From assembly GCA_965112735.1 (NCBI GenBank), contig OZ218962.1:1612001-1676000 (forward strand): a stretch of 64,000 bases of DNA, read 5' to 3'. Source of the stretch: Phaeosaccion multiseriatum (Eukaryota; Protista; Ochrophyta, other classes). Below are positions 3,001 to 50,025 of this stretch, piece after piece. The notes below the pieces were generated by a model that made no database searches, was not told the DNA's origin, and was given only the letters and a program-made list of their open reading frames with translations. How positions within the stretch are numbered: position 1 is the first letter of the stretch; each line of letters starts with the position of its first letter. The translations under genes were made by a program, and so were the position numbers.

Positions 3001-4221
3001 CCACTGGCTCTGTTGTAGTGAGCCAATGCCCAGTGCGGTCCTGTTGTGGCCAGCAAGCGCGTGGTTCAGGCTGTGTGTGCCCACCAAGGCTTTGCTTGGG
3101 CCCTTTTGAGCCCAACAAAGGGCCATTTGAGCCGATCGGAGACCCCACTTGGCATCGTTGAGGCAATGCAGTATTCTCACTGGCTCTGTTGTAGTGAGCC
3201 AATGCCCAGTGCGGTCCTGTTGTGGCCAGCAAGCGCGTGGTTCAGGCTGTGTGTGCCGGCCTTGGGCCCTTTTGAGCCCAACAAAGGGCCATTTGAGCCG
3301 ATCGGAGACCCCACTTGACATCGTCGAGGCAATGCAGTATTCTCACTGGCTCTGTTGTAGTGAGCCAATGCCCAGTGCGGTCCTGTTGTGGCCAGCAAGC
3401 GCGTGGTTCAGGCTGTGTGTGCCCACCAAGGCCGGCCTTGGGCCCTTTTGAGCCCAACAAAGGGCCATTTGAGCCGATCGGAGACCCCACTTGACATCGT
3501 TGAGGCAATGCAGTATTTCCACTGGCTCTGTTGTAGTGAGCCAATGCCCAGTGCGGTCCTGTTGTGGCCAGCAAGCGCGTGGTTCAGGCTGTGTGTGCCG
3601 GCCTTGGGCCCTTTTGAGCCCAACAAAGGGCCATTTGAGCAGATCGGAGACCCCACTTGGCATCGTTGAGGCAATGCAGTATTCTCACTGGCTCTGTTGT
3701 AGTGAGCCAATGCCCAGTGCGGTCCTGTTGTGGCCAGCAAGCGCGTGGTTCAGGCTGTGTGTGCCGGCCTTGGGCCCTTTTGAGCCCAACAAAGGGCCAT
3801 TTGAGCCGATCGGAGACCCCACTTGACATCGTTGAGGCAATGCAGTATTCTCACTGGCTCTGTTGTAGTGAGCCAATGCCCAGTGCGGTCCTGTTGTGGC
3901 CAGCAAGCGCGTGGTTCAGGCTGTGTGTGCCGGCCTTGGGCCCTTTTGAGCCCAACAAAGGGCCATTTGAGCCGATCGGAGACCCCACTTGACATCGTTG
4001 AGGCAATGCAGTATTTCCACTGGCTCTGTTGTAGTGAGCCAATGCCCAGTGCGGTCCTGTTGTGGCCAGCAAGCGCGTGGTTCAGGCTGTGTGTGCCCAC
4101 CAAGGCCGGCCTTGGGCCCTTTTGAGCCCAACAAAGGGCCATTTGAGCCGATCGGAGACCCCACTTGACATCGTTGAGGCAATGCAGTATTTCCACTGGC
4201 TCTGTTGTAGTGAGCCAATGC
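1..4221. repeat. Tandem satellite, left block (~24 monomers of 176/166 bp), runs off the window start
   Basis: Monomer GAGCAGATCGGAGACCCCACTTGACATCGTTGAGG...CCCAACAAAGGGCCATTT repeats head-to-tail. The 166-bp form lacks CACCAAGGCC. Near-identical ORFs recur at 176, 518 and 1046 bp spacings. Confidence 0.98.
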
Positions 4222-4840
4222 TGTTAGAAGTCGTGCTTTTGCTAGACTGGTACCTACCCTCTGAATTCAGACCGGGAGGTACCAGTCTAGCAAAAGCACG
4301 ACTTCTAACAAGGCCATTGCGAGTTCGAATCCTGGCTGTAGCTTGTGAAAAAAGTGTGTTTTTCGGCGAAAACTGGTACCGGCTGGCACCCATTAGTCTG
4401 ATTCCCAGACTGCGAGTTACTTCTCTCCACTATGTGCGGTGGGGGGGGGGGGGGGTTCGACTTCTAGCATTAGGGCTTTGTTAGAAGTCGTGCTTTTGCT
4501 AGACTGGTACCTCCCGATCTGACTGGTACCTCCCGGTCTGAATTCAGAGGGTAGGTACCAGTCTAGCAAAAGCACGACTTCTAACAAGGCCATTGCGAGT
4601 TCGAATCCTGGCTGTAGCTTGTGAAAAAAGTGTGTTTTTCGGCGAAAACTGGTACCGGCTGGCACCCATTAGTCTGATTCCCAGACTGCGAGTTACTTCT
4701 CTCCACTATGTGCGGTGGGGGGGGGGGGGTTCGACTTCTAGCATTAGGGCTTGTTAGAAGTCGTGCTTTTGCTAGACTGGTACCTACCCTCTGAATTCAG
4801 ACCGGGAGGTACCAGTCTAGCAAAAGCACGACTTCTAACA
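4222..4840. repeat. Left terminal array: H(flip)-B>-H(flop,+19 bp)-B>-H(flip)
   Basis: Hairpins at 4222-4310, 4479-4586 and 4752-4840, each with 34-bp arms TGTTAGAAGTCGTGCTTTTGCTAGACTGGTACCT. Spacer B lies at 4311-4478 and 4587-4751; a truncated B follows at 4841-4894. Confidence 0.95.
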
Positions 4841-5651
4841 AGGCCATTGCGAGTTCGAATCCTGGCTGTAGCTTGTGAAAAAAGTGTGTTTTTCCCGCTG
4901 TAAGGCACCGCTCCCGGCAAACTCAAAGCTACCGAGCTGCTGCCTGAGCCTCTTGGCCAAGGTCAGCTGCCTTCGGGATTCTTTGGGGTTGTAAAGAGTC
5001 ACGTTGCTCTCCACCTAGGATAGGAGTAGCCGCATGGACAAGGTAATAGCAACCCCAAAGCCAGCCTGGCAGCCAGCCTTGTCTCTATTAGCTTTATCCG
5101 TGAGCCATCCTAAACGACCAACCTGCTGGGAGGTGAGTGAGAAACGGGCCACGCACCGTTTCTCACCGTATTTGCCTGGGCCTGGGCCATTGACATAATA
5201 CTGACTTTCAACATCCCCGTCAGCCATCCCTGCACTTCTAACATCCCCCTGAACTAAACTATTGCGTGTCCCCACGCAACTCAAAGCGGGTTCGCCTACT
5301 AAAGCTCGACTTGTAGCAAAAGCCTCCATGTTGCTTCCAATAAAAACGGATGAGAAATATGCAAAACTCACCCAGGTGTGTGCGACCGCTCCTCCAACAC
5401 ACACCCTCCTGTATTGGTGAGAAAACCCCACGACTCAAACTCACCCACACAGGCTCACGGATGAGAACATCCCATGACTCAAACTCACCCGCGCAATTCT
5501 CTATCTCCACTCCTACTCGCCACCAGCGTTGCCAAAGCCTCGTTGCGCACCACTAATGCTGACTGCTCAAGTGTTTACTGGTGTGCCTACAAGGCACCCA
5601 GACAGTCCCTAAAGCAGCCTTGCGAGTATCCTTCTCTGTCTCCCGCCAAGC

Positions 5652-6316
5652 TCCGTGCAACAGCAACAGCCGCGCTGCTGCCACACTCGAAAGCCGTGCC
5701 CGCTGTAGGGCACCGCTCTCGGCAATTCTCTATCTCCACGGCCCACCAAGCTCCAGCAGCAATTTCCGTGCAACAGCAACATCCGTGCTGCTGCCACACT
5801 CGAAAGCCATGCCCGCTGACTAAGGCACCACTCCCGGCAATTCTCTATCTCCACGGCCCATCAAGCTCCAGCAGCAATTTCCGTGCAACAGCAACATCCG
5901 TGCTGCTGCCACACTCGAAAGCCGTGCCCGCTGTAAGGCACCGCTCCCGGCAATTCTCTATCTCCACGGCCCACCAAGCTCCAGCAGCAATTTCCGTGTA
6001 ACAGCAACATCCGTGCTGCTGCCACACTCGAAAGCCATGCCCGCTGTAAGGCACCGCTCCCGGCAATTCTCCATCTCCACTGCCCACCAAGCTCCAGCAG
6101 CAATTTCCGTGTAACAGCAACATCCGTGCTGCTGCCACACTCGAAAGCCGTGCCCGCTGTAAGGCACCGCTCCCGGCAATTCTCTATCTCCACGGCCCAC
6201 CAAGCTCCAGCAGCAATTTCCGTGTAACAGCAACATCCGTGCTGCTGCCACACTCGAAAGCCATGCCCGCTGTAAGGCACCGCTCCCGGCAATTCTCCAT
6301 CTCCACTGCCCACCAA
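5652..6316. repeat. 113-bp minisatellite (~6 copies) inside the hairpin element
   Basis: Unit ...CCGTGCAACAGCAACATCCGTGCTGCTGCCACACTCGAAAGCC...GGCAATTCTCTATCTCCAC... repeats every 113 bp. Partial copies occur at ~4895-4920 and ~5492-5510. Confidence 0.93.
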
Positions 6317-6318
6317 CA

Positions 6319-6928
6319 TGTTAGAAGTCGTGCTTTTGCTAGACTGGTACCTACCCTCTGAATTCAGACCGGGAGGGTACCAGTCTAGCAAAAGCACGAC
6401 TTCTAACAAGCCCTAATGCTAGAAGTCGAACCCCCCCCCCCCCACCGCACATAGTGGAGAGAAGTAACTCGCAGTCTGGGAATCAGACTAATGGGTGCCA
6501 GCCGGTACCAGTTTTCGCCGAAAAACACACTTTTTTCACAAGCTACAGCCAGGATTCGAACTCGCAATGGCCTTGTTAGAAGTCGTGCTTTTGCTAGACT
6601 GGTACCTCCCGGTCTGAATTCAGAGGGTAATTCAGAGGGTAGGTACCAGTCTAGCAAAAGCACGACTTCTAACAAGGCCATTGCGAGTTCGAATCCTGGC
6701 TGTAGCTTGTGAAAAAAGTGTGTTTTTCGGCGAAAACTGGTACCGGCTGGCACCCATTAGTCTGATTCCCAGACTGCGAGTTACTTCTCTCCACTATGTG
6801 CGGTGGGGGGGGGGGGGTTCGACTTCTAGCATTAGGGCTTGTTAGAAGTCGTGCTTTTGCTAGACTGGTACCTCCCGGTCTGAATTCAGAGGGTAGGTAC
6901 CAGTCTAGCAAAAGCACGACTTCTAACA
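6319..6928. repeat. Right terminal array forming a ~610-bp near-perfect palindrome: H(flip)-<B-H(flop,+12 bp)-B>-H(flop)
   Basis: Hairpins at 6319-6408, 6574-6674 and 6840-6928. B is reverse-complemented at 6409-6573 and forward at 6675-6839. Confidence 0.95.
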
Positions 6929-6991
6929 ATGCCCAGTGCGGTCCTGTTGTGGCCAGCAAGCGCGTGGTTCAGGCTGTGTGTGCCGGCCTTG
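6929..6991. repeat. 63-bp satellite fragment between two insertions
   Basis: ATGCCCAGTGCGG...GCCGGCCTTG continues the interrupted monomer in register. Confidence 0.95.
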
Positions 6992-27921: not shown

Positions 27922-28857
27922 GCCTGTTCAGCAGCGCAGCAACGGAACTTTGTTTCTCGCGGAACAGAGACGAGGAAGAGGTGGGAGACATGGGAGCCAG
28001 CAGGGCGAAGCGTCAGCGTAGGTGCTTGGTACCGCCCCAAGGGGGGGGGTCCCCTCTGGAGAGATGTACAGTATGTCAGTGAAGCAGGGAATTTAGATTT
28101 TTCAGAAGAGGAGAGACCTTGGCGTGTGCTGTCACTTACTGAGGCGGCGGAGACAGAGCCCAGGAAGAGTGGAGCACACTGTCAAGGAGGAGAGTAGATA
28201 CTGGTGTGGTGGAAAGCGAGCCTCTTGTCCTGGGCCCGGACAGAGCGCTTGTGTCGGCCAAGGGGACCCGCCTGGTGTTGAGTGCCGGGGTCCTCGTGGG
28301 CGAGGGAAGGAGAGATAGGGAGACTGTGTCTGGTGTTGAGTGCCGACAGTGTCCACGGTGTTGAGTGCCGGAACTCTTCTTTTCTTTCCCACCCACCCAC
28401 CCTCAGTCTTAGTTTTAGTTTTAGATACTCATACATTATGGGGGTGAAGCGGGACTTGGGGTGCTCACTGCGGTGGCACCCCAAGCTCCACTACATCCGA
28501 AACCCGGTGCCCGCCTCCCTCCATGGAGGCGGCCCCCTTGGAGGCGCTCTGCGCTCCCAAGGTGGGAGTCCCTCACGGGACTGCCCCCCCCTACTAATGA
28601 TGAGTCCTTCCCCCAACGTTAGCTACCCCTGGTCCACGACCTCTCCACCTGCGGAGCAGGTGGCCACTTGGGAGTCCAACCCTATTCCTCTTGGCCTCGA
28701 ACAGCCGGCTACGGCGTGGATGTGGATAGTCCTCAGCTTGCATACTGCGACGCCTTGGAGCGGGAGTCGGACATCTCCCGGGCCCTCGCCTACGACTGAA
28801 GGGAGGAGGCCTCTCACTGGCTTCCCACCTTCGCCCGAGCGCCGCGACGGCGCGAAA
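27922..28857 (+). mobile_element. Solo A-spacer-B remnant of a diverged split-direct-repeat element (relative of 6992-10397)
   Basis: Start GCCTGTTCAGCAGCGCAGCAACGGAACTTTGTTTCTCGCGGA resembles the A start. It shares the CCACCCACCCACCC...TTAGATACTCA spacer and ends GAGCGCCGCGACGGCGCGAAA, like the B end. The satellite rejoins TTCA|GGCTG; boundary ambiguous by 1-2 bp. Confidence 0.8.
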
Positions 28858-29380
28858 GGCTGTGTGTGCCCACCAAGGCCGGCCTTGGGCCCTTTTGAGC
28901 CCAACAAAGGGCCATTTGAGCAGATCGGAGACCCCACTTGACATCGTTGAGGCAATGCAGTATTCTCACTGGCTCTGTTGTAGTGAGCCAATGCCCAGTG
29001 CGGTCCTGTTGTGGCCAGCAAGCGCGTGGTTCAGGCTGTGTGTGCCGGCCTTGGGCCCTTTTGAGCCCAACAAAGGGCCATTTGAGCAGATCGGAGACCC
29101 CACTTGGCATCGTTGAGGCAATGCAGTATTCTCACTGGCTCTGTTGTAGTGAGCCAATGCCCAGTGCGGTCCTGTTGTGGCCAGCAAGCGCGTGGTTCAG
29201 GCTGTGTGTGCCGGCCTTGGGCCCTTTTGAGCCCAACAAAGGGCCATTTGAGCAGATCGGAGACCCCACTTGGCATCGTTGAGGCAATGCAGTATTCTCA
29301 CTGGCTCTGTTGTAGTGAGCCAATGCCCAGTGCGGTCCTGTTGTGGCCAGCAAGCGCGTGGTCAGGCTGTTTGTGGCCCA
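28858..29380. repeat. Terminal ~3 satellite monomers with degenerate right edge
   Basis: Monomer continues, then decays (GTCAGGCTGTTTGTGGCCCAC) near 29360-29380. Confidence 0.93.
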
Positions 29381-29399
29381 CAATAAGTGCCGGAGACTC

Positions 29400-32300
29400 T
29401 CTGCCTGACTCACTCCCGCCTCAGTAACTCACCCACTCACTCGTTCACCCACTCACTCCCTCACTCCCTCCAGGCTCTCACATTCAGTCTCCTATGGACG
29501 CGCCCTTATCTTTTGTACTTACTCCCTGACTCCCTCCCTCACTCTCTGCCCCACCCCCTCCCTCCCTCCCTCCCTCCCTCCCTCAGGGTCACTCACTCAC
29601 TCACTCACTCACTCACGCACTCCCTCCCTCACTCCTTCCACTCACTTCATCCCTCCCTCCTCTCACACCTTTCCTAAGCACGCATGCACTCACTCACTCA
29701 CTCACTCACCCCGCCCCTCCCTTCCTCTCTCCCCCTCTCCCTCCCTCTCTCCCTCCCCCTCCCTCACTCACGCCCTTACTCCCTCGCTCTCTCCCCCCCT
29801 CCCTTCCTCCCTCCTTCATGCACTGACTCACTGACCCACCGACTCCCTCCCTCACATACTCATGCACTCACTTACCCACTCACTCCCTCATCCCTCCCTG
29901 CCCTCACACTCACTCTCTTACGCACGCACGCACAAACGCACTCACTCCCTTCCTCCCTCCCTCCCTCCCTACCTACCTTCCTCCCTCCCTCCCTCCCTCC
30001 CTCCCTCCCTACCTTCCTCCCTCCCTCCCCCCCTCCGTCCCTCACTCACTCACTCACTCACTCACTCACTCACTCACTCACTCACTCACTCACGCACTCA
30101 CTCACACACTCACTCACTCACTCACCCACTCACACACACACTCCCTCACTCCCTCCACTTACTTCATCCCTCCCTCCTCTCAATCCTCTCCTAAGCACGC
30201 ACGCACGCACGCACTCACGCACTCACTCTCTACTCACTCCACCCTTCGCTTCCTATTGCCCTCTCTCCCTCCGTCCCTCCCTCCCTCTCTCTTACCCACT
30301 CCCTCCCTCCATCACTGACCCACTGACTCTCTGACTCACTCCCTCACTCACTCACAAACTCACCAACTCACCCACTCACTCCCTCACTCGCTCCCTGCTC
30401 TCCCTCCCCCGCCCCCTCTCTCACTCACGCCCTTCCTCCCTTATTCTCGCGGTCCCTTACTCTCTGCCCCCCTCCCTCTCTCGCTGATTAACTCACTCCC
30501 TCACCGACTCACTCATCCACCCGATCACCCACTCACTCCCTCACTCCCTCCCTGCTGTCACACTCACTCTCCCATAAACGCACGCACGCAGACACTCACT
30601 TTCACTCCCTCCCCCCCCTTCTCTCCCTCTCTCCCTCCGTCACTCCCTCCCCTCTTCTCACCCACTCCCTCACTTCATTCATCACTCCCTTCTTCCGTCC
30701 CTCCCTCCCTTCCTCACTGACTCACTTTCTCACTTCCTCACCCATTCCCTCACTCACTGACTTCCTCACTTCCTCACCCATTCCCTCACTCACTCACTCA
30801 CTCACTCACTCACTCTCACTCACTCACTCACTCACTCACTCACCCACTCACCCATTCACTCCCTCACTCCCTCAACTCACTTCATCCCTTCCTCCTCCTC
30901 ACGTATCTCTTAGGCACGTACGCACTGGCTCACTCACTCACTCACTCACTCACTCACTCACTCCATCCTTCACTCACTCCCTCTCTCGCTCCATTCCTCC
31001 CTCCCTCCCTCCCTCCCTCCCTTCCTCCCTCCCTCCCTCCCTCCCTCCCTCTCCCTCACTCACGCCCTTACTCCATTTCTCTCTCCCCCCCTCCCTCCTT
31101 CCCTCACTGACTGACTGACTCACTCACTCACTCACTCCCTCACTCCCTCACTCACTCTCCCACTCACCCTCTCACCCACTCACTCCCTCACTCCCTCCCA
31201 GCTCTCACACTAACTCTCTTACGCACGCACGCACGCACGCACTCACTCCTCCTTTCACTCCCTCCCTCCCTCCCTCCCTGCCTCCCTCCCTATCTCTCAC
31301 CCTCCCTCCCCCCCTTCCTCCCTCCCTCCCTCCCCCCCTTCCTCCCCCCCTTCCTCCCTCCCTCCCTCCCTCCCCCCCTCCTTCCCTCCCTCCCCTTCTC
31401 TCTCCCTCTCTCCCTCTCTCCCTCCCTCCCTCCCTCCGTCCCTCCCTCCCTCCGCCCCTATGTAAATAGTCAATTAGACTACTAGACAAGTGTGAGCTAC
31501 TGGCATGTGTATTACAACAGCTTAACCCGAGAGCAAGCCTGCTGGCTGCTCTATCCTTACAAAACCAGGCTCTGAGAGAGAAGCCCGAGCTCCTGCCATG
31601 CATCACCAGCTCGCGTGCCCACCGGGGACAGATCACAGATCACAAATAGAACCGACGTGCACTACCTACCCTCACTCACTCCACCCTTAACATCCTCCCT
31701 CCCTCCCTCCCTCCCTCTCTCTCACGCACGCCCTTACTCCCTAACTCTCTCCCCCTCCCTAGCTGATTCACTGACTTACTGACTCACTGACTCACTCCCT
31801 CACTGACTCACCCACTCATTCACTCACTCCCTGTCTGCTCTCACACTCATTCTCTTACGCACGCACGCACGTACTCACTTACTCCACCTTTCACTCCCTC
31901 CATCCCTCACTCCTTCAGTCACTGACTCACTCCTTCGTTCTCTCCCTCCCTCCCTGCCTCACTCACTGACTCCCGTACTCCCTCCCTTCCTCACTGACTC
32001 ACTGACTCACTGACTAACTATCTCACTCACCCACTCACTCACTCACTCACTCACTGACTCACTTCCTTCACTCCCTCCTAGCTCTCACACTCACTCTCTT
32101 ACGTACACACGCACGCATGCACACACTCACTCACTCCACCTTTCACTCCCTCCCTCCCTTCCTCCCTCCCCCCCCTCACTCACTCCGTCGCTTACTCCCT
32201 CACTCCCTTCCTCCCTCCCTCTCTCTCTCCCTCACTGACTCACCTACTCACTCCCTCACTCCCTCCCTCACTCCCTCCCTCCCTCCCTCCCTCCCTCCCT

Positions 32301-35300
32301 CCCTCCCTCCCTCCCTCACTCACTCACTCACTCACCCACTCACTCTCTCACCTATTCACTCCCCCACTCCCTCCACTCACTTCATCCCTTCTCTCCTCTC
32401 ACATCTCTCTTAAGCACGCACGCACGCACTCACTCACTCACTCACTCACTCACTCACTCACTCCACCCGTCACCCACTCCACCCTTCACCCCCTCCCCCC
32501 CTTCCTCCATCCATCCCTCCATTCCCTCTCTCATTCGCTCCCTCACTCCCTCCCTCCCTCACTCCCTCACCGACGCACTTATTCACTTTCTCACTCACAC
32601 CCTTCCTCACTCACTCACTCACTCACCCACTCATTCCCTCACTCCCTCCACTCACTTGATCCCTCCCTCTTCTCACACCTCTCTTCAGCACGCGCGCACG
32701 CCATGACTCACTCACGCACTCACTCACTCCACCCTTTACTCCGTCTCACCCTCTCTCTCTCCCTCCCTCCCTCCCTCTCTCCCTCCCTCCCTCCCTCCCT
32801 CCCTCTCTCTCACTCACTCCCTTACTCCCTCACTCTCTCGTCCCCTCCCTCCCTCCCTCCCTCCCTCACTGACTGTGAGACTTACTGACTCACTGACTCA
32901 GTCCCTCACTCACTCACCCACTCCCTCACTCACTCACTCCCTCCTCTAACACTCATTCTCTTACGCTCGCACGATGCACTCACTCCCCCTTTCACTCACT
33001 CACTCACTCACCCACTCACCCACTCATCCACTCATCCACTCACCCACTCACTCCCTCCCTGCTCTCATACTCTCTTACGCACGCACCCACGCAGGCACTC
33101 ACTCACTCCACCGTTCACTGCCTCCCTCCGTCCCTCCCTCTCTCCCTCTCTCCCCCTCTCCCCTCTCCCTCCCTCGCCCCCCTCTCTCACTCCCTCCCCT
33201 ACTTCCGCACTCCCTTCCTTCCTCCCTCCCTCCCTCCCTCCCTCACTGACTCACCTACTCACTACCTCACTCACTCACCCACTCACCCACTCACTTCCTC
33301 ACTCCCTCCACTTACTTCATCCCTCCCTCCTCTCACATCTGTCTTAATTAAGCACGCACGCACTCACTCACTCATTCACTCACTCCACCCTTTACTCCCT
33401 CTCTCTCTCCCTCTCTATATCCCCTCTCTCTCTCTTCATCACTCTATCACTTACTTCCTCCGTCACTCTCTCCCTCACTCACTGACTCACTGACTCCCTT
33501 TCTCACTCACGCCCTCCCTCCCTCGCTCACACACTCGCACACTCACTCCCCCATTTTTCCTCACTCCCTTCACTCGCTTCATCCCTCCCTCCTCACATCT
33601 CTCTAAGGCACGCACTCACTCACTCATTCACTCACTCACTCCACCCTTTTCTCCCTCTCACCCTCTCTCCCTCTCTCCCTCTCTCCCTCCGTCCTTCCCT
33701 CCCTCTCTCTCACTTCCTCCCCTATTCCCTGACTCTCTCTCTCCCTCCCCTCCTCCCTCCCTCCCTCCCTCCCTCACTGAATGTGAGAGTAACTGACTCA
33801 CTGCCTCACTGCCTCACTCACTCACCCACTCACTCACTCACTCACTCACTCACTCCCTCCTTGCTCTCACACTCACTCTCTTACCCATGCACGTATGCAC
33901 GCACGCACTCACTCACTCCACCTTTCACTCCCTTTACCTTATATATATGCACGCACGCACTCACTCGTTCCACCTTTGACTACCTCCATCCCTCCCTCTC
34001 CCTCATGCCACCTTTCACTTCCTCCCTCCATCCCTCCCTCGCTCCCCCCCTCACTCCCTCCCCTCTCTCATTCACTCCCTCACTCCCTCACTCCCTTCCT
34101 CTCTCCCTCCCTCCCTCCCTCCCTCATTGACTCACCTACTCACTTCCTCACTCACTCTCTCACTCACTCACTCACTGACCAACTCAGCCACTCACTCCCT
34201 CACTCCCTCCACTCACTTCATCCCTCTCTCCCCTCACACCTCTCTCAAGCACGCACGAACCTCACTCACTCACTCACTCCACCTTTCACTCGCTCTCTAC
34301 CTCCCTCTATCCCTCTCTCGCGCCCTCCATCCCCTCTCTCTCACTTACTCACTCACTCCCTTCCTCCGTCAGTCCCTCCCTCTCTCACTGACTCACTGAC
34401 TCACTCCCTCACTCACACCCTCCCTCCCTCACACACTCACTTACCCACTCACTCCCTCACTCCCTTACTCCCTCACTCTCTCCCGCCCTCCCTCCCTCCC
34501 TCCCTCCCTTTCTCACTCCCTCACCCACTTACTCTCTCACTCCTTCCACTCACTTGATCCCACCCTCCTCTCGCACCTCTCTTAAGCATGCACGCACGCA
34601 AGTACTCACTCACTCCACCCCTCACTCCCTCTCTCCGTCCCACCCTCCCTCCCTCCCTACCTACCTACCTGCCTCCTCTCTCTCAGTCACTCCTTCACTC
34701 CCTCACTCCCTTCTTTCCCCATCTCTTCCTCACTGTCTCATCTGCTCACTTCCTCACACTCTCCCTACCTCCTTTCCTCTCTCCCTCCCTCCGTACCTCC
34801 TCTCTCTCACTCACTCCCTCCCTCCCTCCCTCCCTCCCTCCCTCCCTCCCTCCCTCCCTCCCTCCCTCCCTCCCTCCCTCCCTCCCTCCCTCCCTCACTC
34901 ACTCACTTCCTTCCTCCGTCACTCACTCCCTCCCTCACTGACTCACTGACTCACTGACTCACTGACTCACTGACCCACTCACACCCTCCCTCACTCACTC
35001 ACCCACTCACTCCCTCACTCGCTCACTCCCTCCACTCACCTCATCCCTCCCTCCTCTCACCCCTCTCTTAAGCACACACGCACGCAATCACTCACTCACT
35101 CACTCACTCACTCACTCACTCCACGCTTTACTCCCTCTCACCCTCTCTCCCTCTCTCCCTGTCTCCCTCCCTCCCTCCCTCCCTCCCTCTCACTCACTCT
35201 CTTCCTCCCGCACTATCTCCCGCCCTTCCTCCCTCCCTGCCTTCCTCCCTCAATCCTCCCCCATTGACTGTGAGACTTACTCACTGATTGACTCACTCAC

Positions 35301-38300
35301 CTGACTCACTCACTCACTCACTCACCCATGCACTTACTCACTCCCTCCCTCCCTCCCTGCTCTCACACTCATGCTCTTATGCACGCACGCACGCACACAC
35401 GCACTCACTCCACCTTTCACTCCCTCCCTCTCTCCCTCCCTCCCTCCCTTCCTCCCTCCCTCCCTGCCCTCTCTCCCTCCCTCCCTCACTCCCTCACTCC
35501 CTCACTCCCTCACTCCCTCACTCCCTCACTCCCTCACACCCTCACTCCCTCACTCCCTCACTCCCTCACTCCCTCACTCCCTCAGTCCGTTAGTCCCTCC
35601 TCCCTCCCTTCTTTCCTCCCTCACTGACTCACTGACTCACTTCCTCAGTCCCTCAATCACTGACTCACCCACGCACCCACTCACCTACTCACTCACACTA
35701 CTCACTCACACATTCTCCCTCCACTCACTTTATCCCTCCCTCCCTCCCTCCCTCCCTCCCTCCCGCTCTCTCTCTCACTCACTCTCTCACTCCCCCACTC
35801 TCTCCCCCCATCCCTCCTTCCCTCTCTCCCTCCCTCCCTCCCTCACTGACTTACTGACTCACTGAATCTCTCCTTCCCGCACTCACTCACTCACTCACTC
35901 ACTCACTCACTCCCTCACTCCCTCACTCACCCACTCACTCCCTCACTCACTCACTCCCTCCCTCCCTCCCTCCCTCCCTCCCTCCCTCCCTCCCTCCCTC
36001 CCTCCCTCCCTCCCTCCCTCCCTCCCTCCCTCCCTCCCTCCCTCCCTCCCTCCCTCCCTCCCTCCCTCCCTCCCTCCCTCCCTCCCTCCCTCCCTCCCTC
36101 CCTCCCTCCCTCCCTCCCTCCCTCCCTCCCTCCCTCCCTCCCTCCCTCCCTCCCTCCCTCCCTCCCTCCCTCCCTCACTCACTCACTCCCTCCCTCCCTC
36201 CCTCCCTCCCTCCCTCCCTCCCTCCCTCCCTCCCTCCCTCTCTCTCTCTCCCTTCCTCTTTCCCTCCCTCCCTCCCTCACTCACTCACTCACTCACTCAC
36301 TCCCTCACTCACTCACTCACTCACCCGCTTACTCTCTCACTCCTTCCTTTCACTTGATTCCTCCCTCCTCTCGCACCTCTCTTAAGCACGCACATACTCA
36401 CGCACGCACGCACTCATTCACTCCACCCTTCACTCCCTCCCTCCGTCCCTCCCTCCATCCCCTTTCTCACTTACTCTCTCACTCACCCTCTCACTCACTC
36501 TCTCAGTCACTCTCTCACTCCCTCTCTCTCTCCCCCCTCCCTCTCTCCCTCCCTTCCCCCTTCCCTCATTCACGCACTTCCTCTCTCACTCACTCCCTCA
36601 ATCACTCACTCACTCACGCGCCCTCTCACCTACTCACCCGCCCGCCCACTCACTCACTCACTCACTCACTTCCTCACTCCCTCACTCCCCCAATCGCTCC
36701 TCCCTCCCTCCCTCCCTCCCTCACTGACTCACTGACTCACTGACTCACTGACTCACTCCCGCTCTAACTTACGCACGCACGCACGCACGCACACACCATT
36801 CACTCACCAACTAACTCACTCACTCACGCATGCACGCATACACGCACCAATCATCCCTCATTCAGTCATTCACTCACTCTCTCACCCACTCACTTGCTCC
36901 CGCCCTCACTCCCTCACCCACTCACTCACTGCTCACTCACTTACCCGTCACTCGCCATCCCTCCCTCCTTCACTCACTCACTCACTCACTCACTCACTCA
37001 CTCATCCACTCACCCACTCCCTCCCTCCCTCCCTCACTCACTCACTCACTCACTCTCGCTCACTCACTGACTCACTGACTCACTCACTCACTTCCTCTCT
37101 CACTCACTCACTTCACCCTTCGCTTCCGCCCTCACTCACTCTCTCCCTCACTCACTCACTCCACCCTTCACTGCCTCCCTCACTCACTTCATCCCTTCCT
37201 CCTCTCACACTCACTCGCTTACTTAATACTTACGCACGCACTAAATTCACCCACGCACCCACTCACCCCCTCATTCACTCCCTCACACGCGCGCACCAAT
37301 CACTCCCTCCCTCACCCACTCACCCACTCACCTACTTACACACCTACTTACTCATCCACTCACCTACTTACTCACCCACTCACCCAGCTACTTACACACT
37401 CACTCACCTACTTACTTACTTACTCACCTATTTGCTCACCCACTCATCCACTCACCCACTTACTGCCCCCCTCACTCACTTCATCTCTACCTCTTCTCAC
37501 ACTCACTCTCTTCTTCACGCACGTACGCACGTACTCACTCCCTGTACCCTTCACTCCCTCCCTCCCTCCTTCTCTCTCTCCCTGACTCCCTCCCTCCCTC
37601 CCTCCCTCCCTCACTGACTCACTGACTCACTGACTCACTGACTTACTCACGCACACACTCACCCACCCCCCCCAAATCCCTCGCTCACCACCGACGTGAC
37701 GCCGACCCAGCTCGCTCTGACATAACTCGCTCACTCACTCATCACTCAGCTACTCCCTCGCTCACTCACTCACTCACTCACTCACTCACTCACTCACTCA
37801 CTCACTCACTCACTCACTCACTCACTCACTTACTCACTCCCTCCCTCCCTGCTCTCACACTCATGCTCTTATGCACGCACACACGCACACACGCACACAC
37901 GCACTCACTCCACCTTTCACTCCCTCCCTCTCTCCCTCCCTCTCTCCCTTCCTCCCTCCCTCCCTGCCCTCTCTCCCTCCCTCCCTAACTCCCTCACTCC
38001 CTCACTCCCTCACTCCCTCACTCCCTCACTCCCTCACTCCCTCACTCCCTCACACCCTCACTCCCTCACTCCCTCACTCCCTCACTCCCTCACTCCCTCA
38101 GTCCGTTAGTCCCTCCTCCCTCCCTTCTTTCCTCCCTCACTGACTCACTGACTCACTTCCTCAGTCCCCCAATCACTGACTCACCCACGCACCCACTCAC
38201 CTACTCACTCACACATTCTCCCTCCACTAACTTTATCCCTCCCTCCCTCCCTCCCTCCCTCCCTCCCTCCCTCCCTCCCTCCCTCCCTCCCTCCCTCCCT

Positions 38301-41300
38301 CCCTCTCTCTCACTCACTCTCTCACTCCCCCACTCTCTCCCCCCATCCCTCCCTCCCTCCCTCCCTCCCTCCCTCACTGACTTACTGACTCACTGAATCT
38401 CTCCTTCCCGCACTCACTCACTCACTCCCTCACTCCCTCACTCCCTCACTCCCTCACTCCCTCCCTCCCTCCCTCCCTCCCTCCCTCCCTCCCTCCCTCC
38501 CTCCCTCCCTCCCTCCCTCCCTCCCTCCCTCCCTCCCTCCCTCCCTCCCTCCCTCCCTCCCTCCCTCCCTCCCTCCCTCCCTCCCTCCCTCTCTCTCTCT
38601 CTCCCTCCCTCCCTCCCTCCCTCCCTCCCTCACTCACTCACTCACTCACTCACTCACTCACTCACTCACTCACTCACTCACTCACTCACCCGCTTACTCT
38701 CTCACTCCTTCCTTTCACTTGATCCCTCCCTCCTCTCGCACCTCTCTTAAGCACGCACGTACTCACGCACGCACGCACTCACTCACTCCACCCTTCACTC
38801 CCTCCCTCCGTCCCTCCATCCATCCCCTCTCTCACTTACTCTCTCACTCACCCTCTCAGTCACTCCCTCACTCCCTCCCTCACTCCCTCACTCTCTCCCC
38901 CCTCCCTCTCTCCCTCCCTTCCCCCTTCCCTCATTCACGCACTTCCTCTCTCACTCACTCCCTCAATCACTCACTCACTCACGCGCCCTCTCACCTACTC
39001 ACCCGCCCGCCCACTCACTCACTCACTCACTCACTGACTCACTCACTCACTCACTCACTCACTCACTCACTCACTCACTCACTCACTCACTCACTCACTC
39101 ACTTGCCCACGCACACACTCATTCACTCACTCACTCACTCACTCACGCACTCACTCACTCACTCACCCAGCCACTCACCCAGCCACTCACCCACTCCCTC
39201 CCTCCCTTCCTCCTCTCTCACATACTCCCTCACTCCCTTACTCTCCTCTCCACTCCCTCCCTCCATTCCTCCCTCCCCCGCTGACTCACTTACTCACTCC
39301 CTCACTCACTCACTCACTCACTCACTTACTCACTCACTCACTCACTCACTCACTCACGCACGCATCTCTGACCTTCACACTCTCCCACTTACTCCCTCAC
39401 TCTCTCTCTCACTCAGACAACCACTTACTCCATCCCTCCCTCACTCACTCACTGACTCACTCATGCACCCTCTCACCCATTCACTCACCCACTCACTCAC
39501 TCCGTCACTCACTCCATCACTCACTTTGTCACTCACTCACTTACCCACTCACTCACCCACTCACTCACCCATTTACTCACTCACTCCCCTCACTCCCCAC
39601 CCACTCCCCCACTCACTCTCTCACTCAGTTCATCCCTCCCTCCTCTCACACTCACTCACTTGTGCACGCACGCACCCAAATCGCCCACCCACTCACCCAC
39701 TCTCCCATTTTAGCGAACGATCTAAATACGGCCGGAGCAAGCTCGCTCTACAATACACTCACTCACTCACATACTCAACTCAACTCTCTCACCCACTCAC
39801 TCACGCTTGCGCGCACGCACCACTCTCTTCCTCCATCACTCAACCACTCACTCACTCACTCACTCACTCACTCACTCCCTCCCTAACTCACTCACTCACT
39901 CACTTACTTACTTACTCACTCACTCACTCACTCACTTAGTTCTCCTCACTTGTTTTTAGTCTCTATCCTACCGAGCCAGTTCGCTCTTATTCCAACGCAC
40001 TCACCTACTCACTCGCCCACTAGCTACCGAGCAGGTTCGCTCTATAATACACTCATTCACTCACTCTCTCACTCCCTCCATCACTCACTTCATCCCTCCC
40101 TCCTCTCACACTTACTTACTTACTTACTTACTTACGCTCGCACGCACACACTCGTTCACATACTCTACCCTTCACTCCCTCCCTCCTTCTCTTCCTTCCA
40201 CCCCCCCTCCCTCCCCCCCTCTCTCACTCCCTCCCTAACTCCCTAACTCTCTCCCCCCTTCCCTCCTCCCTCCATCCCTCCCTCCCTCACTAACTCACTG
40301 ACTCACTGACTTGATCCCTCACTCACTCCCTACTCACAAACCCTCTCATCCACACACTCGCCCCCTCACTCACTCACTCACTCACGCACCCACTCAATCA
40401 CTCACTCACTCACTCACTCGCTCACGCCCTCACCCACCCACCCACGCACTCACTCACTCACTCACTCACCCACTCTCGCACTCACTCACTCACTCACTCA
40501 CTCACTCACTCACCCACCCACTCACTCCCCTCACTTCATCCCTCCCTCCTCTCACACACTCTCTTACGCACGCACACACGCCCATACTCACTCCCTCCCT
40601 CACTCCCTCCATCCCTCTCTCACTATCTCACTCCCTCACTCTCTCCCTCCCTCCTTCCCTCCCGCCCTCACTCACTCACTCACTCTCTCACTCACTCACT
40701 CCACCCCTTACTCCCTCCCTCACTTACTCCCATCCCTCCCTCCTCTCACACTCACCAACATACTCACACACGCACGTACGCGCCCAAACCATCCACTCAC
40801 CCACTTACACATGCACTCACTCACCCACTCACGCAGGCACCAATCACTCCCTCCCTCACCACTCACTCATTCACTCACTCACCATTCACTTCCACCCTCC
40901 CTCCCTCCCTCCCTCACTCGCTCACCCCCCCACCCTCTCACTCACTCACGCACTCACTTACTTACTCTCTCACTCCACCGTTCGTTTCCTCCCTCACTCG
41001 CTTTCTCCCTCGCTCAATCACTCCACCCATCATTCCCTCCCTTACTCACTTAATCCCTCCCTCCTCCCACACTCACTCGCTTACTTACTTACGCACGCAC
41101 CCAAATAATCCACTCACCCACTCCCTCCCTTACTTCCTCACTCATTCCCTCCCTCGCTCCCTCCCTCACTCATTCCCTCCCTCATGCACTTCATTCTTCC
41201 TCCTCTCACAATCATTCTCTTCCGTACGCAGGCATACAGACATGCACTCAGCCACTTACTCCACCCTTCCTCCCTTCCTTCCTTCTTTCCTTCCTTCCTT

Positions 41301-44300
41301 CCTTCCTTCCTTCCTTCCTTCCTTCCTTCCTTCCTTCCTTCCTTCCTTCCTTCCTTCCTTCCTTCCTTCCTTCCTTCCTTCCTTCCTTCCTTCCTTCCTT
41401 CCTTCCTTCCTTCCTTCCTTCCTTCCTTCCTTCCTTCCTTCCTTCCTTCCTTCCTTCCTTCCTTCCATCCTTCCTTCCTTCCTTCTTCCCACCCTTCTTT
41501 CCTTCCTTCCTCCCACCCTTCCTTCCTTCCTTCCTTCCTTCCTTCCTTCCTTCCTTCCTTCCTTCCTTCCTTCCTTCCATCCTTCCTTCCTTCCTTCCTC
41601 CCACCCTTCTTTCCTTCCTTCCTCCCACCCTTCCTTCCTTCCTTCCTTCCTTCCTTCCTTCCTTCCTTCCTTCCTTCTTCCCTCCCTCCCTCCCTCCCTC
41701 CCTCCTTCCCTCCCTCCCTTCCTTCCTTCCTTCCTTCCTTCCTTCCTTCCTTCCTTCCTTCCTTCCTTCCTTCCTTCCTTCCTTCCTCCCTCCCTCCCTC
41801 CCTCCCTCCCTCCCTCCCTTCCCCGCTCCTTCCCTCCCTCCCTCCTTCCCTCCCTCCCTCCCTCCCTCCCTCCCTCCCTCCCTCCCTACCTACCTACCTA
41901 CCTACCTCCCTCCCTCCCTCCCTCCCTCCCTCCCTCCCTCCCTCCCTCCCTCCCTCCCTCCCTCCCTCCCTCCCTCCCTCCCTCCCTCCCTCCCTCACTC
42001 GCTCCCTCCCTCACTCGCTCCCTCCCTCACTCACTCACTCACTCACTTACTCACTCACTCACTCACTCACTCACTCAATCACTCACCCACTCACCAACTC
42101 ACTCACTGCCTCCTTCACTCACTCCCTCCCTCCCTCCCTCCCTCCCTCCCTGCCACCCTCCCTCACTCACTCACTCACTCACTTACTCACTCACTCACTC
42201 ACTGCCACCCTCCCTCACTCACTCACTCACTCACTCACTCACTCACTCACTCACTCACTCACTCACTCATTCACTCACTCACTCACTCAATCACTCACTC
42301 ACTCACTCACTCACTCACTCACTCACTCACTCACCCACTCACCCACTCACTCACTGCCTCTCTCACTCCCTCCCTCCCTCCCTCCCTCCCTCCCTCCCTC
42401 CCTCATTCACTCACTCACTCACTCACTCACTCACTCACTCACTCACTCACTCACTCACTCACTCACTCACTCACTCACTCACTCACTCACTCAATCACTC
42501 ACTCACTCACTCACACACTCACACACTCACTCCCTCACTCCCCCCCTCCCTCCCTTACTCCCTCCCCCCCTCCCTCCCTCCCTTCCACCCTCCCTTTCAC
42601 CCGCCCTCGCTCCCTCCCTCCCTCCCTCCGTCCCTCCCTCCGTGCCTCACTCCTTCCCTCCGTCCCTCCCTCCCTCCCTCCCTCCCTCCCTCCCTCCCTC
42701 CCTCCCTCCCTCCCTCCCTCCCTCCCTCCCTCTCTCCTTACTCCCTCCCTCCCTCCCTCCCTCCCTCCCTCCCTCCCTCCCTCCCTCCCTCCCTCCCTCC
42801 CTCCCTCCCTCCCTCCCTCCCTCCCTCCCTCCCTCCCTCCCTCCCTCCCTCCCTCCCTCCCTCCCTCCCTCCCTCCCTCCCTCCCTCCCTCCCTCCCTCC
42901 CTCCCTCCCTCCCTCCCTCCCTCCCTCCCTCCCTCCCTCCCTCCCTCCCTCCCTCCCTCCCTCCCTCACTCACTCCCTCCCTCCCTCCCTCCGTCCGTCC
43001 GTCCCCTCCCTCCCTCCCTCCCTCCCTCCCTCCCTCCCTCCCTCACTCACTCACTCACTCACTTACTCACTCACTCATTTACTCACTCACTCACTTACTC
43101 ACTCACTCACTCAATCACTCACCCACTCACCAACTCACCTACTGCCTCCTTCACTCCCTCCCTCCCTCCCTCCCTCCCTCCCTCCCTCCCTCCCTCCCTC
43201 CCTCACTCACTCACTCACTCACTTACTCACTAACTCACTCACTCACTCATTCACTCACTCACTCACTCACTCACTCACTCACTCACACACTCACTCACTC
43301 ACTCACTCACTCACTCACTCACTCACTCACTCACTCACCCACTCACTCACTGCCTCTCTCACTCCCTCCCTCCCTCCCTGTCTCCCTCCCTCATTCACTC
43401 ACTCACTCACTCACTCACTCACTCACTCACTCACTCACTCACTCACTCACTCAATCACTCACTCACTCACACACACACTCACTCACTCACTCCCTACCTC
43501 CCTCCCTCCCTTACTCCCTGCCCCCCTCCCTCCCTCCCTTCTTCCCTCCCTTCCACCCTCCCTCCCTCCCTCCCTCCCTCCGTCCCTCCCTCCGTGCCTC
43601 CCTCCCTCCCTCCCTCTCTCCATCCCTCCCTCCCTCCCTCCCCCCCTCTCTCCCTCCCTCCCTTCCTCCCTCCCTCCTTCCCTCCCTCCCTCCCTCCCTC
43701 CCTCCCTCCCTCCCTCCCTCCCTCCCTCCCTCCCTCCCTCCCTCCCTCCCTCCCTCCCTCCCTCCCTCCCTCCCTCCCTCCCTCCCTCCCTCCCTCCCTC
43801 CCTCCCTCCCTCCCTCCCTCCCTCCCTCCCTCCCTCCCTCCCTCCCTCCCTCCCTCCCTCCCTCCCTCCCTCCCTCCCTCCCTCCCTCCCTCCCTCCCTC
43901 CCTCCCTCCCTCCCTCCCTCCCTCCCTCCCTCCCTCCCTCCCTCCCTCCCTCCCTCCCTCCCTCCCTCCCTCCCTCCCTCCCTCCCTCCCTCCCTCCCTC
44001 CCTCCCTCCCTCCCTCCCTCCCTCCCTCCCTCCCTCCCTCCCTCCCTCCCTCCCTCCCTCCCTCCCTCCCTCCCTCCCTCCCTCCCTCCCTCCCTCCCTC
44101 CCTCCCTCCCTCCCTCCCTCCCTCCCTCCCTCCCTCCCTCCCTCCCTCCCTCCCTCCCTCCCTCCCTCCCTCCCTCCCTCCCTCCCTCCCTCCCTCCCTC
44201 CCTCCCTCCCTCCCTCCCTCCCTCCCTCCCTCCCTCCCTCACTTATCCACTCACCTCCCTCCCTCCGAGCTCGGTCTCCCTGGAACGCACTTATCCACTC

Positions 44301-47300
44301 CCTCCCTCCCTCCCTCCCTCACTCTCCCTCCCTCCCTCCCTCACTCTGGCCCTCCCTCCCTCCCTCCCTCCCTCCCTCCCTCCCTCCCTCCCTCACTTGT
44401 GCACCTCCCTCCCTCACTCTCCCTCCCATCCCTCGCTCTCCCTCATACTCCCTCCCTCCCTCCCTCCCTCCCTCCCTCCCTCCCTCCCTCCCTCAACCTC
44501 GCACTCACGCAAACCCTCACCTCCCTCTCTCTCCCTCCCTCCCTCACCTCCCTCCATCGCCGAGCCAGCTCGCACTATAACACAGCTCACTCACTCACTC
44601 ACTCATCACTCACTCACTCACTCATCACTCACTCACTCATTCACTCACTCACTCGTTCACTCACTCACTCACTCACTCACTCCCATCCTCCTCGCCTCAT
44701 TCACTCCCTCATCCACTAACTCGCTTACCAACTCACTTACTCACATACTCCTTCACGTGCTCCCTCAATCCCTCTCTCCGTCACTCACTCCCTCCCTCAC
44801 TCGCTCCCTCACTCACTCACTCACTCACTCACTCACTCACTCACTCACTGACTCACTCACTCACTCAATCACTCCCTCACTCATTCACTCACTCACTCAC
44901 TCACTCACTCACTCACTCACTCACTCACTCACTCACTCACTCACTCACTCACTCCCTCACTCACTCACTCACTCACTCACTCACTCACTCACTCACTCAC
45001 TCACTCACTCACTCACTCACTCACTCACTCACTCACTCAATCCCTCACTCACTCACTCACACACTCACACACTCACTCACTCACTCCCCCCCTCCCTCCC
45101 TTACTCCCTCCCCCCCTCCCTCCCTCCCTTCCTCCCTCCCTTCCACCCTCCCTCCATCCCTCCCTCCCTCCGTCCCTCCCTCCCCTCCGTCCCTCCCTCC
45201 CTCCCTCACTCCCTCCCTCCCTCCCTCCCTCCCTCCCTCCCTCCCTCCCTCCCTCCCTCCCTCCCTCCCTCCCTCCCTCACTCCCTCCCTCCCTCCCTCC
45301 CTCCCTCCCTCACTCCCTCCCTCCCTCCCTCCCTCCCTCCCTCCCTCCCTCCCTCCCTCCCTCCCTCCCTCCCTCCCTCCCTCCCTCCCTCCCTCCCTCC
45401 CTCCCTCCCTCCCTCCCTCCCTCCCTCCCTCCCTCCCTCCCTCCCTCCCTCCCTCCCTCCCTCCCTCCCTCCCTCCCTCCCTCCCTCCCTCCCTCCCTCC
45501 CTCCCTCCCTCCCTCCCTCCCTCCCTCACTCCCTCACTCCCTCCCTCACTCCCTCCTCCCTCACTCACTCACTCACTCACTCACTCACTCACTCACTCAC
45601 TCACTCACTCACTCACTCACTCACTCACTCACTCACTCCCTCCCTCCCTCCCTCCCTCCCTCCCTCCCTCCCTCCCTCCCTCCCTCCCTCCCTCCCTCCC
45701 TCCCTCCCTCCCTCCCTCCCTCCCTCGCTCCCTCCCTCCCTCCCTCCCTCCCTCCCTCCCTCCCTCCCTCCCTCCCTCCCTCCCTCCCTCCCTCCCTCCC
45801 TCCCTCCCTCCCTCCCTCCCTCCCTCCCTCCCTCCCTCCCTCCCTCCCTCCCTCCCTCCCTCCCTCCCTCCCTCCCTCCCTCCCTCCCTCCCCCTCTCTC
45901 CCTCCCTCCCTTCCTCCCTCCCTCGCCCCCTCCCTCCCTCCCTCCCTCCCTCCCTCCCTCCCTCCCTCCCTCCCTCCCTCCCTCCTTCCCTCCCTCCCTC
46001 CCTCCCTCCCTCCGTCCCTCCCTCCCTCCCTCCCTCCCTCCCTCCCTCCCTCCCTCCCTCCCTCCCTCCCTCACTCGCTCCCTCCCTCACTCGCTCCCTC
46101 ACTCACTCACTCACTCACTCACTCACTCACTCACTCACTCACTCACTCACTCACTCACTCACTCACTTACTCACTCACTCACTCACTCACTCACTCACTC
46201 AATCACTCACCCACTCACCAACTCACCTACTGCCTCCTTCACTTACTCCCTCCCTCCTTCCCTCCCTCCCTCCCTCCCTCACTCACTCACTCACTTACTC
46301 ACTCACTCACTCACTCACTCACTCACTCACTCACTCACTCACTCACTCACTTACTCACTCACTCACTCACTCACCCACTCACACACTCACTCACTGCCTC
46401 TCTCACTCCCTCCCTCCCTCCCTCCCTCCCTCATTCACTCACTCACTCACTCACTCACTCACTCACTCACTCACTCACTCACTCACTCACTCACTCACTC
46501 ACTCACTGACTCACTCACTCACTCACTCACTCACTGACCCACGCACTCACGCACACACTCACCCACCCTCTCCCTCACTCCCTCGCTCACGATCGATGTA
46601 TCGCCGAGCCAGCTCGCACTATAACACAGCTCACTCACTCACTCACTCACTCACTCACTCACTCACTCACTCACTGCCTCCTTTACTCCCTCCCTTCCTC
46701 CCACCCTCCCTCCCTCACTCACTCCCTCCCTTCCTCCCTCCCTCCCTCCCTCCCACCCTCCCTCCCTCACTCACTCCCTCCCTCCGTCCCTCCCTCCCTC
46801 CCTCCCTCCCTCCCTCCCTCCCTCCCTCCCTCCCTCCCTCCCTCCCTCCCTCCCTCCCTCCCTCCCTCCCTCCCTCCCTCCCTCCCTCCCTCCCTCCCTC
46901 CCTCCCTCCCTCCCTCCCTCCCTCCCTCCCTCCCTCCCTCCCTCCCTCCCTCCCTCCCTCCCTCCCTCCCTCCCTCCCTCCCTCCCTCCCTCCCTCCCTC
47001 CCTCCCTCCCTCCCTCCCTCCCTCCCTCCCTATAACCCTCCCTCCCTCCCTCCCTCCCTCCCTCCCTCCCTCCCTCCCTCCCTCCCTCCCTCCCTCCCTC
47101 CCTCCCTCCCTCCCTCCCTCCCTCCCTCCCTCCCTCCCTCCCTCCCTCCCTCCCTCCCTCCCTCCCTCCCTCCCTCCCTCCCTCCCTCCCTCCCTCCCTC
47201 CCTCCCTCCCTCCCTCCCTCCCTCCCTCCCTCCCTCCCTCCCTCCCTCCCTCCCTCCCTCCCTCCCTCCCTCCCTCCCTCCCTCCCTCCCTCCCTCCCTC

Positions 47301-49700: not shown

Positions 49701-50025
49701 GTGGTAGAGCTACCTCTCTCTGCCTGAAGAGTACCGAGACAACCCCCAAGCTGAGCACTACCGAGGGTAAGAGAGTTGCGAGAAGAGACCATAAATGCTA
49801 TTAGAGAGCAAGGGCGCCATCCTGACCCAGAGACCCTGGAATCTTCCTTGTGTAAAGGAAGCTTTCCAATTGGTCTATTGGCGATGTTGTGAGTGTAGCC
49901 TCTCCGTCGTCTCTCTCTCTCAGGAGGGGGAGAGAGAGCTTTAAGTTAACGAACATGGCAAAGTGGGGCCGGTGTGCTACAAGTAAAGTAGCAAAGTAGT
50001 GAAGCATGAAATTGATTAAGCCCCT

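Follow-up and report, generated by a model that had tools for sequence, protein, structure and literature searches.

A rearranged, passenger-carrying foldback element built of 89-bp hairpins in Phaeosaccion multiseriatum, probably moved in trans by an integrase

Positions 4222-6928 of a 64,000-nt stretch of the Phaeosaccion multiseriatum genome (the window; C13:1612001-1676000 in an assembly of 67 Mb and 22 contigs) hold an element composed of 89-bp hairpins (H) and spacers (B), which is probably a rearranged, passenger-carrying copy of a young, lineage-specific and non-autonomous foldback family that is moved in trans by an integrase. A first-pass annotation of the window had described a mobile, non-coding element whose hairpins occur as flip and flop isomers around an invertible spacer, and had suggested a Ginger-type integrase together with ends amplified or isomerised either by hairpin-primed replication or by inversion from arm to arm.

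The modules were mapped by direct reading, with a repeat finder and with a BLAST annotation using the arm, the centre and the spacer as queries. The hairpin has the ends TGT..ACA and consists of a 34-nt arm, a 21-nt centre and a second 34-nt arm, where the centre ACCCTCTGAATTCAGACCGGG is denoted '+' and its reverse complement '-', and the inverted repeat of the family starts with TGTTAGAAGTCG. As described in the first pass there are six copies of H with perfect 34-bp arms, with '+' centres in H1, H3 and H4 and '-' centres in H2, H5 and H6, and all arms of the window copy (12/12) are one identical 34-mer. The four full spacers (about 166 bp) are forward three times and inverted once, also as described, and a 54-bp forward stub of B at 4841-4894 has to be added to that list. 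The overall order is H1(+) B(+) H2(-) B(+) H3(+) B-stub(+) / 1424-bp interior / H4(+) B(-) H5(-) B(+) H6(-), so that the copy falls into three parts, namely a right unit at 6319-6928 that taken whole is one canonical H-B(inv)-H-B-H foldback unit, a left direct array (H B+) x3 in which the third spacer is truncated, and a passenger between them. The target duplication ATGC (4 bp) is located at 4218-4221 and 6929-6932, and one satellite unit is restored when the element is removed. An uninterrupted satellite unit is present in a contig from another sample of the same organism, but in a tandem satellite such a unit does not represent an allelic empty site. Single-stranded H DNA folds at -44.8 kcal/mol, with z = -16 against shuffles. 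The element has no coding capacity; its longest open reading frame (ORF) is at most 182 aa, and its ORFs gave 0 Pfam matches.

Searching the genome with the arm 34-mer gave 290 matches at up to two mismatches versus 0 for the reversed control, corresponding to about 145 hairpins including those of a subfamily, which has two arm substitutions (G14A and G29A) and is 94% identical in the arms and 85-88% in B. About 25 loci, numbered with the prefix L, were annotated in detail. The recurrent form is H(+) B(-) H B(+) H(-) with a length of 597 bp, found at independent loci and also in the diverged subfamily, and in L041 it is a perfect palindrome with 288-bp arms around a 21-nt centre (-403 kcal/mol), where even the 13-nt homopolymer tracts are of equal length. 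Perfect 4-bp duplications bound 15 elements ranging from lone 89-bp hairpins up to 2.7 kb, and the sequences ATGC, ACAT, CTTC, CGTG, CCAT, CGTA, AACG, GTCA, ACAG, ATCT, TGCG, ATGG, GGAG, CAAC and CGCG show no consensus. The chance expectation of each such duplication is 1/256, indicating that the elements are true insertions. Copies of the family are 98-100% identical and the family is therefore young. In the contig sets of two related organisms (X2 and X3) the interior of the window copy is present and the depth over H and B is zero, which makes the H/B family look lineage-specific. No description of nested-hairpin foldback elements with 4-bp duplications was found in the open-access literature text.

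Intact multi-hairpin elements bounded by duplications number 11 (the window copy, L033, L036a, L036b, L037, L038, L041, L042, L045, L046 and L061), and in these the left end hairpin is '+' and the right one '-' at 22/22 ends. Next to the end hairpins lie B(-) at the left side and B(+) at the right side, a rule from which only the left end of the window copy departs, and reading inward from either end gives one sequence over at least 288 bp. Flip at the left and flop at the right is ordinary inverted-repeat symmetry with no isomerism, and the invertible spacer is simply both arms of a foldback; the parallel that the first-pass annotation drew with hairpin-ended replicons, and its invertible spacer, are accordingly not supported. 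The middle hairpin is '+' in L041 and '-' in L038, and as the standard element is otherwise perfectly palindromic, the state of this hairpin only records the orientation of the insertion.

Direct arrays, lone hairpins and the odd left half of the window copy all fit recombination between interchangeable H arms. Every H arm is identical and palindromic, so homologous recombination between arms would build direct arrays, invert spacers and delete modules until a lone hairpin is left. The right end of L053 (H+ B- H+, duplication CAAC) breaks the orientation rule, and this element is exactly the H-B-H product expected of a deletion between the middle and right hairpins. The lone hairpins that retain a duplication (L049, L050 and L052) would fit the same process, by analogy with solo long terminal repeats (LTRs). 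A junction of B(+) followed by H(+) is absent from standard elements and is seen in the left half of the window copy, in L040 and in L032; such a junction is the expected product of an unequal exchange of an end hairpin with a middle one. Of the two routes to the ends named in the first pass, arm-to-arm recombination thus fits the variant arrays, whereas hairpin-primed replication agrees poorly with the fixed ends. Two loci, L043:3162-3503 and L048:3180-4813, lack a direct 4-bp duplication, and the DNA flanking the H array forms an inverted repeat of its own (about 240 bp long and 94% identical in the former, about 100 bp and 92% in the latter); either the element lies at the centre of a larger palindrome or the flank has been copied by fold-back duplication.

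The interior of the window copy comes from another repeat, here called X, which is about 1.7 kb long, has TGT..ACA ends and direct terminal repeats of 224 bp (TGTAAAGAG...TTTCAACA), and contains a tandem array of a 113-bp unit. X is non-coding, and a clean copy flanked by the 4-bp duplication CTGC is found at L067:1501-3209. The passenger begins with 27 nt of the 113-bp repeat, followed by a pre-LTR part (4921-4989), one LTR with the ends TGTAAAGAG..TTTCAACA (4990-5213), an internal part and the 113-bp array (5593-6318), and 4990-6316 is 99.7% identical to C13:3204637-3205964. Since the piece is permuted (array end, pre-LTR, one LTR, internal part, array) it is a captured X fragment, such as a tandem X or a composite move would leave, and not an X integration. 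The composite occurs only once, as a search for a further copy showed the junction between B stub and passenger to be unique genome-wide. At eight or more loci X and an H element are no more than about 1 kb apart, which may reflect an insertion preference or shared repeat-rich regions. X, seen in L064-L068 among other loci, has many copies that are 99-100% identical, occurs as tandems as well, and is also carried by related organisms.

The ends TGTTA...TAACA fit the TGTNR rule common to Gypsy LTRs and Ginger elements, and TGTNR ends combined with a 4-bp duplication are the signature of retroviral-type (rve) integrases. X carries the same signature, and the first-pass description of a mobile, non-coding element with such ends and such a duplication is borne out; X also shows that an integrase making 4-bp duplications at TGT..ACA ends is active in this genome. 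Most likely a retroviral-type DDE integrase or transposase, supplied in trans, would join the TGT..ACA ends of the H elements to a 4-bp staggered cut, and the movement would take place at the DNA level. The basic module is the 89-bp hairpin, in which the two transposon ends, left and right, stand back to back, and the standard element is the 597-bp palindrome H-B(inverted)-H-B-H. Genome-wide there are 71 rve matches, and most adjoin an RVT_1 reverse transcriptase. Three rve frames have no RVT_1 or RVT_2 nearby, at C10:772260 (1065 aa), C12:1601323 (1035 aa) and C10:789888 (465 aa), with a strong Integrase_H2C2 match (63 bits) immediately ahead of rve on the upstream side in every case; these frames could be Ginger-like transposases or domesticated integrases.

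Other partners were considered and rejected. The long ORFs beside H elements are unrelated to them and represent Gypsy/Copia polyproteins and host genes, and the first 12 nt of the arm, used as a query for an LTR family with H-like ends, found only the second H subfamily. A candidate autonomous copy on C2, where arm sites lie 10.9 kb apart (L031/L032), encloses only a 177-bp satellite, and the hairpin halves at these sites are fragments broken at the apex. What is found there (L031:3412-3668 and L032:5307-5352, at C2:3.747 and 3.758 Mb) is a fragment made of half-hairpin, B and half-hairpin inside the 177-bp satellite, broken at both apexes, with the identical left junction seen again 10.9 kb away.

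Two more families, unrelated in sequence, share the TGTNR ends. The H family starts with TGTTA at both ends in all copies, and families 2 and 3 show TGTTA and TGTAG. Family 2 has the ends TGTTACGATATAAGG..., arms of about 49 nt, spacers of about 250 bp and 115 arm matches genome-wide; its inverted repeat starts with TGTTACGATAT and its foldback build is like that of H/B. It is found as a standard-type foldback with the 5-bp duplication GCTTG in L045:4128-5050, and as a five-hairpin direct array inside the apex of a middle H hairpin in L037:3482-4898, and its hairpin loops vary from copy to copy while the arms are identical. Family 3 (L048:3470-3900), which lies within an H arm and is flanked by the 4-bp duplication ACTG, has TGTAGCCTTTCTGAAGGCAATA inverted repeats and is an ordinary short inverted-repeat element without foldback. 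No homology beyond 10-16-nt words was found among H/B, X, family 2 and family 3. The motif GGTTCGA is present near one end of the family 3 element, and also in B and in the family 2 spacer.

Element-specific variants sit in both arms of L033, L042 and L037, and in these the arms could have been copied from each other. An extra G is found only in the left end hairpin, and is common to the right unit of the window copy and L046; as a difference in one arm has been inherited by two copies, the element has been propagated as a full duplex and not rebuilt from one arm at each move, which weighs against an obligatory snap-back cycle. L045 is a chimera of both H subfamilies. Several features suggest that the hairpins are extruded in vivo, a state in which the apex would easily break or acquire small duplications and inserts. 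Five junctions (L031 twice, L039, L058 and L059) connect foreign DNA to a half-hairpin whose break lies at the apex or right beside it, the middle hairpins H2 and H5 of the window carry apex duplications, and AT-rich apex inserts of 2-18 nt are found in L033, L042, L045 and L054/L055, with larger ones in the middle hairpins of L047 (222 bp) and L037 (the family 2 array). The two half-centres are both of the ACCCT type in L042, L045, L037 and L047 and both of the CCGGG type in L033, so that the bubble of these middle hairpins has been made symmetric. This fits repair of a break at the centre with mismatch correction in the extruded hairpin, and equally well fold-back copying at the axis, the only part of the hairpin-priming idea that may still apply, and at the axis of the element rather than at its ends. 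At L047:3075-7000 (C13:3327075 to the contig end) an H array stops inside the poly-G of B and is followed by TTAGGG repeats for about 3 kb, which looks like a telomere addition at a break in the element.

Several observations weigh against a foldback family moved by an integrase. None of the copies examined encloses an enzyme gene, and an integrase, Rep/HUH or recombinase ORF, which the first-pass annotation had suggested looking for, is absent from them; an autonomous copy with H ends was not found among the loci annotated in detail. Among the 15 duplications there is no CCGG, no CCGT/ACGG and nothing TATA-like, so that they fit the targets of neither Ginger1 (CCGG/CCGT) nor Ginger2 (RTATAY). 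An integrase alone cannot excise DNA, and an enzyme from an LTR retrotransposon would leave the copy-out step unexplained. The same-type half-centres around AT-rich apex inserts in several middle hairpins hint at fold-back copying or hairpin repair in addition to recombination.

The family might instead be a miniature LTR-type retroelement, resembling the terminal-repeat retrotransposons in miniature (TRIM), in which H (89 bp) would serve as the LTR and B would be the internal domain, reverse-transcribed and integrated by the resident LTR-retrotransposon machinery. The multi-hairpin forms would then be LTR-internal-LTR tandems and the lone hairpins with duplications (L049, L050, L052) solo LTRs, and this would agree with the TGT..ACA ends and 4-bp duplications seen also in X, with the direct arrays in the left half of the window copy and in L044, and with the location of H elements about 1 kb or less from X at at least eight loci. 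It is nevertheless unlikely, as the end hairpins and spacers of the standard element are inverted and not direct, no primer-binding site was recognised in the element, the tRNA-like stretch of B is wrong in place and strand and matches no tRNA gene of the genome, and a perfectly self-complementary RNA of 597 nt should be a poor template. Rather improbable too is that the hairpin modules are parasites of an integrase, palindromes with two LTR-like ends that are copied out by hairpin-primed or reverse-transcriptase snap-back synthesis and inserted by the integrase of resident LTR retrotransposons. The middle hairpins with symmetric AT loops, the dimer-like layout that recurs in family 2 and the association with X would be its possible traces.

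A replicon of the rolling-hairpin or snap-back type, in which end hairpins prime synthesis to give inverted dimers and flip/flop isomers before integration, would explain that H-B(inv)-H-B-H is laid out as an inverted H-B-H dimer joined via one hairpin, and the H-B-H monomer does exist (L043). Halves of one type around a short AT-rich loop (L033, L042, L045, L037, L047) and the differing loops on identical arms in family 2 would also be expected, although such symmetric centres also fit centre-break repair or mismatch correction. We regard this origin as very improbable, considering that the ends have a single orientation at 22/22 ends, unlike terminal flip/flop, that the one-arm variant inherited by two copies shows that arms are not regenerated in each cycle, and that the 4-bp duplications point to a DDE enzyme; a Rep/HUH or resolvase ORF is found in no copy examined, with no genome-wide search made. 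That the locus is an assembly artefact is scarcely credible: palindromes are difficult for long-read basecalling and assembly and short-read contigs break inside repeats, but the same modules have exact 4-bp duplications at 15 independent sites, the sequences on either side of the window copy fit together as a single satellite unit, and 59-84% of the sampled words of the locus are present in independent runs.

Compared with known systems, the foldback family described here is closest in behaviour to non-autonomous inverted-repeat elements of the Ginger or integrase type and closest in form to foldback transposons. Like Ginger1/Ginger2 (TDD) and their non-autonomous derivatives it has TGTNR ends and a 4-bp duplication, and a Gypsy-like integrase without reverse transcriptase is plausible as mover, with candidate frames in the genome. 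The inverted repeats of Ginger elements reach about 270 bp (PMC2836005), and those of the H family 288 bp. Unlike in Ginger the end of the repeat is a complete 89-bp hairpin, no partner with the same ends was found, and the targets differ from the CCGG/CCGT of Ginger1 and the RTATAY of Ginger2 (PMC2836005); the Ginger proposal of the first pass therefore stands as to ends and duplication length but not as to target sites. Neither algae nor stramenopiles figure among the sources of the Ginger elements listed by Bao, Kapitonov & Jurka (2010, PMC2836005).

Like the foldback elements (Drosophila FB, Galileo, and those of plants and nematodes), the H element consists mostly of a long inverted repeat of repeated sub-units, with 288-bp arms in the 597-bp element and 254-bp H+B units repeated in the window copy, and it shares with them many non-coding copies, a plasticity driven by recombination and occasional passengers between the arms. 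Foldback families duplicate 7-9 bp of the target and fall within the MULE or P superfamilies, and unlike FB and Galileo the H elements have a 4-bp duplication, TGT..ACA ends and no transposase in any copy examined. To our knowledge nested hairpins at the tips are no feature of foldback families. TRIM elements and solo LTRs resemble the family in having TG..CA ends and short duplications, in forming tandem arrays of repeat, internal part and repeat, and in leaving lone end modules with the duplication intact, but in the standard form of the H element end modules and spacers are inverted and the module is palindromic, and of the TRIM features a primer-binding site, a polypurine tract and a tRNA site were not recognised in H elements. 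A hairpin with an asymmetric centre in two orientations is also found in the inverted terminal repeats of parvoviruses and the telomeres of poxviruses, and H-B-H-B(inv)-H resembles their dimer replicative form; in contrast to these the H elements have a fixed end orientation and are chromosomal insertions with target duplications, and the copies examined contain no Rep or nickase, for which no genome-wide search was made. Each comparison breaks down at a defining feature, which is target preference for Ginger, duplication length and enzyme for FB/Galileo, direct repeats for TRIM, and terminal flip/flop for a hairpin replicon.

Were the partner shown to be an integrase that lacks reverse transcriptase, Ginger-like cut-and-paste elements would be extended to an alga, with a modular design where one 89-bp hairpin supplies both ends and any two modules can move the DNA enclosed by them; the retroelement fragment captured in the window copy would be an example. 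Should the modules instead be integrase parasites, they would form a bridge between retroelements and DNA transposons. The family in any case offers a naturally occurring series of perfect palindromes, from 89 to 597 bp long, that is useful for studies of palindrome instability in vivo because of the apex breaks, the apex insertions and one telomere addition. The features of the window copy and the candidate frames are collected in Table 1.

Table 1. Modules of the window copy with its target site, and candidate integrase frames elsewhere in the genome (window positions unless a contig is given).
Feature	Position	Strand	Remarks
166-bp satellite, insertion target	3500-4221	.	Repeat finder, sequence; left ATGC duplication at 4218-4221
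H1, end hairpin	4222-4310	+	89 nt, centre '+'
Spacer B, forward	4311-4478	+	168 nt, G15 tract
H2, internal hairpin	4479-4586	+	108 nt, centre '-', 19-nt apex duplication
Spacer B, forward	4587-4751	+	
H3, internal hairpin	4752-4840	+	Centre '+'
Truncated B, forward	4841-4894	+	Bases 1-54, fused to passenger
Passenger	4895-6318	+	Permuted piece of the non-coding LTR-type element X
H4	6319-6408	+	90 nt, centre '+', one extra G (variant also in the left hairpin of L046)
Spacer B, inverted	6409-6573	-	
H5, middle hairpin of right canonical unit	6574-6674	+	101 nt, centre '-', 12-nt apex duplication
Spacer B, forward	6675-6839	+	
H6, end hairpin	6840-6928	+	Centre '-'
Right target duplication, then satellite again	6929-6991	.	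ATGC at 6929-6932
Candidate integrase frames	C10:772260-772790, C12:1601095-1601625, C10:789660-790190; also C15:1687030-1687551		H2C2 and rve core, no reverse-transcriptase match nearby

Unless annotators know them, H elements will be taken for microRNA-like hairpins or for misassemblies. Rfam gave microRNA-precursor matches in H copies, including 4755-4837 and 6581-6667, which are sub-threshold (up to 50 bits versus 100) and probably a source of false microRNA annotation, and a microRNA identity of H was rejected since such matches are as for any perfect hairpin. A tRNA origin of the TTCGAATCCTGGCTGTAGC stretch in B was also rejected, as ARAGORN finds no tRNA, and no tRNA-like gene carrying the TTCGAATCCTGGCTGTAGC arm was found genome-wide at up to two mismatches. 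Elsewhere in the window, the region 28000-48000 has an extreme strand composition bias with a GC skew of -0.86 to -0.94 across about 16 kb, and positions 41184-49727 contain an open frame of 2847 aa.

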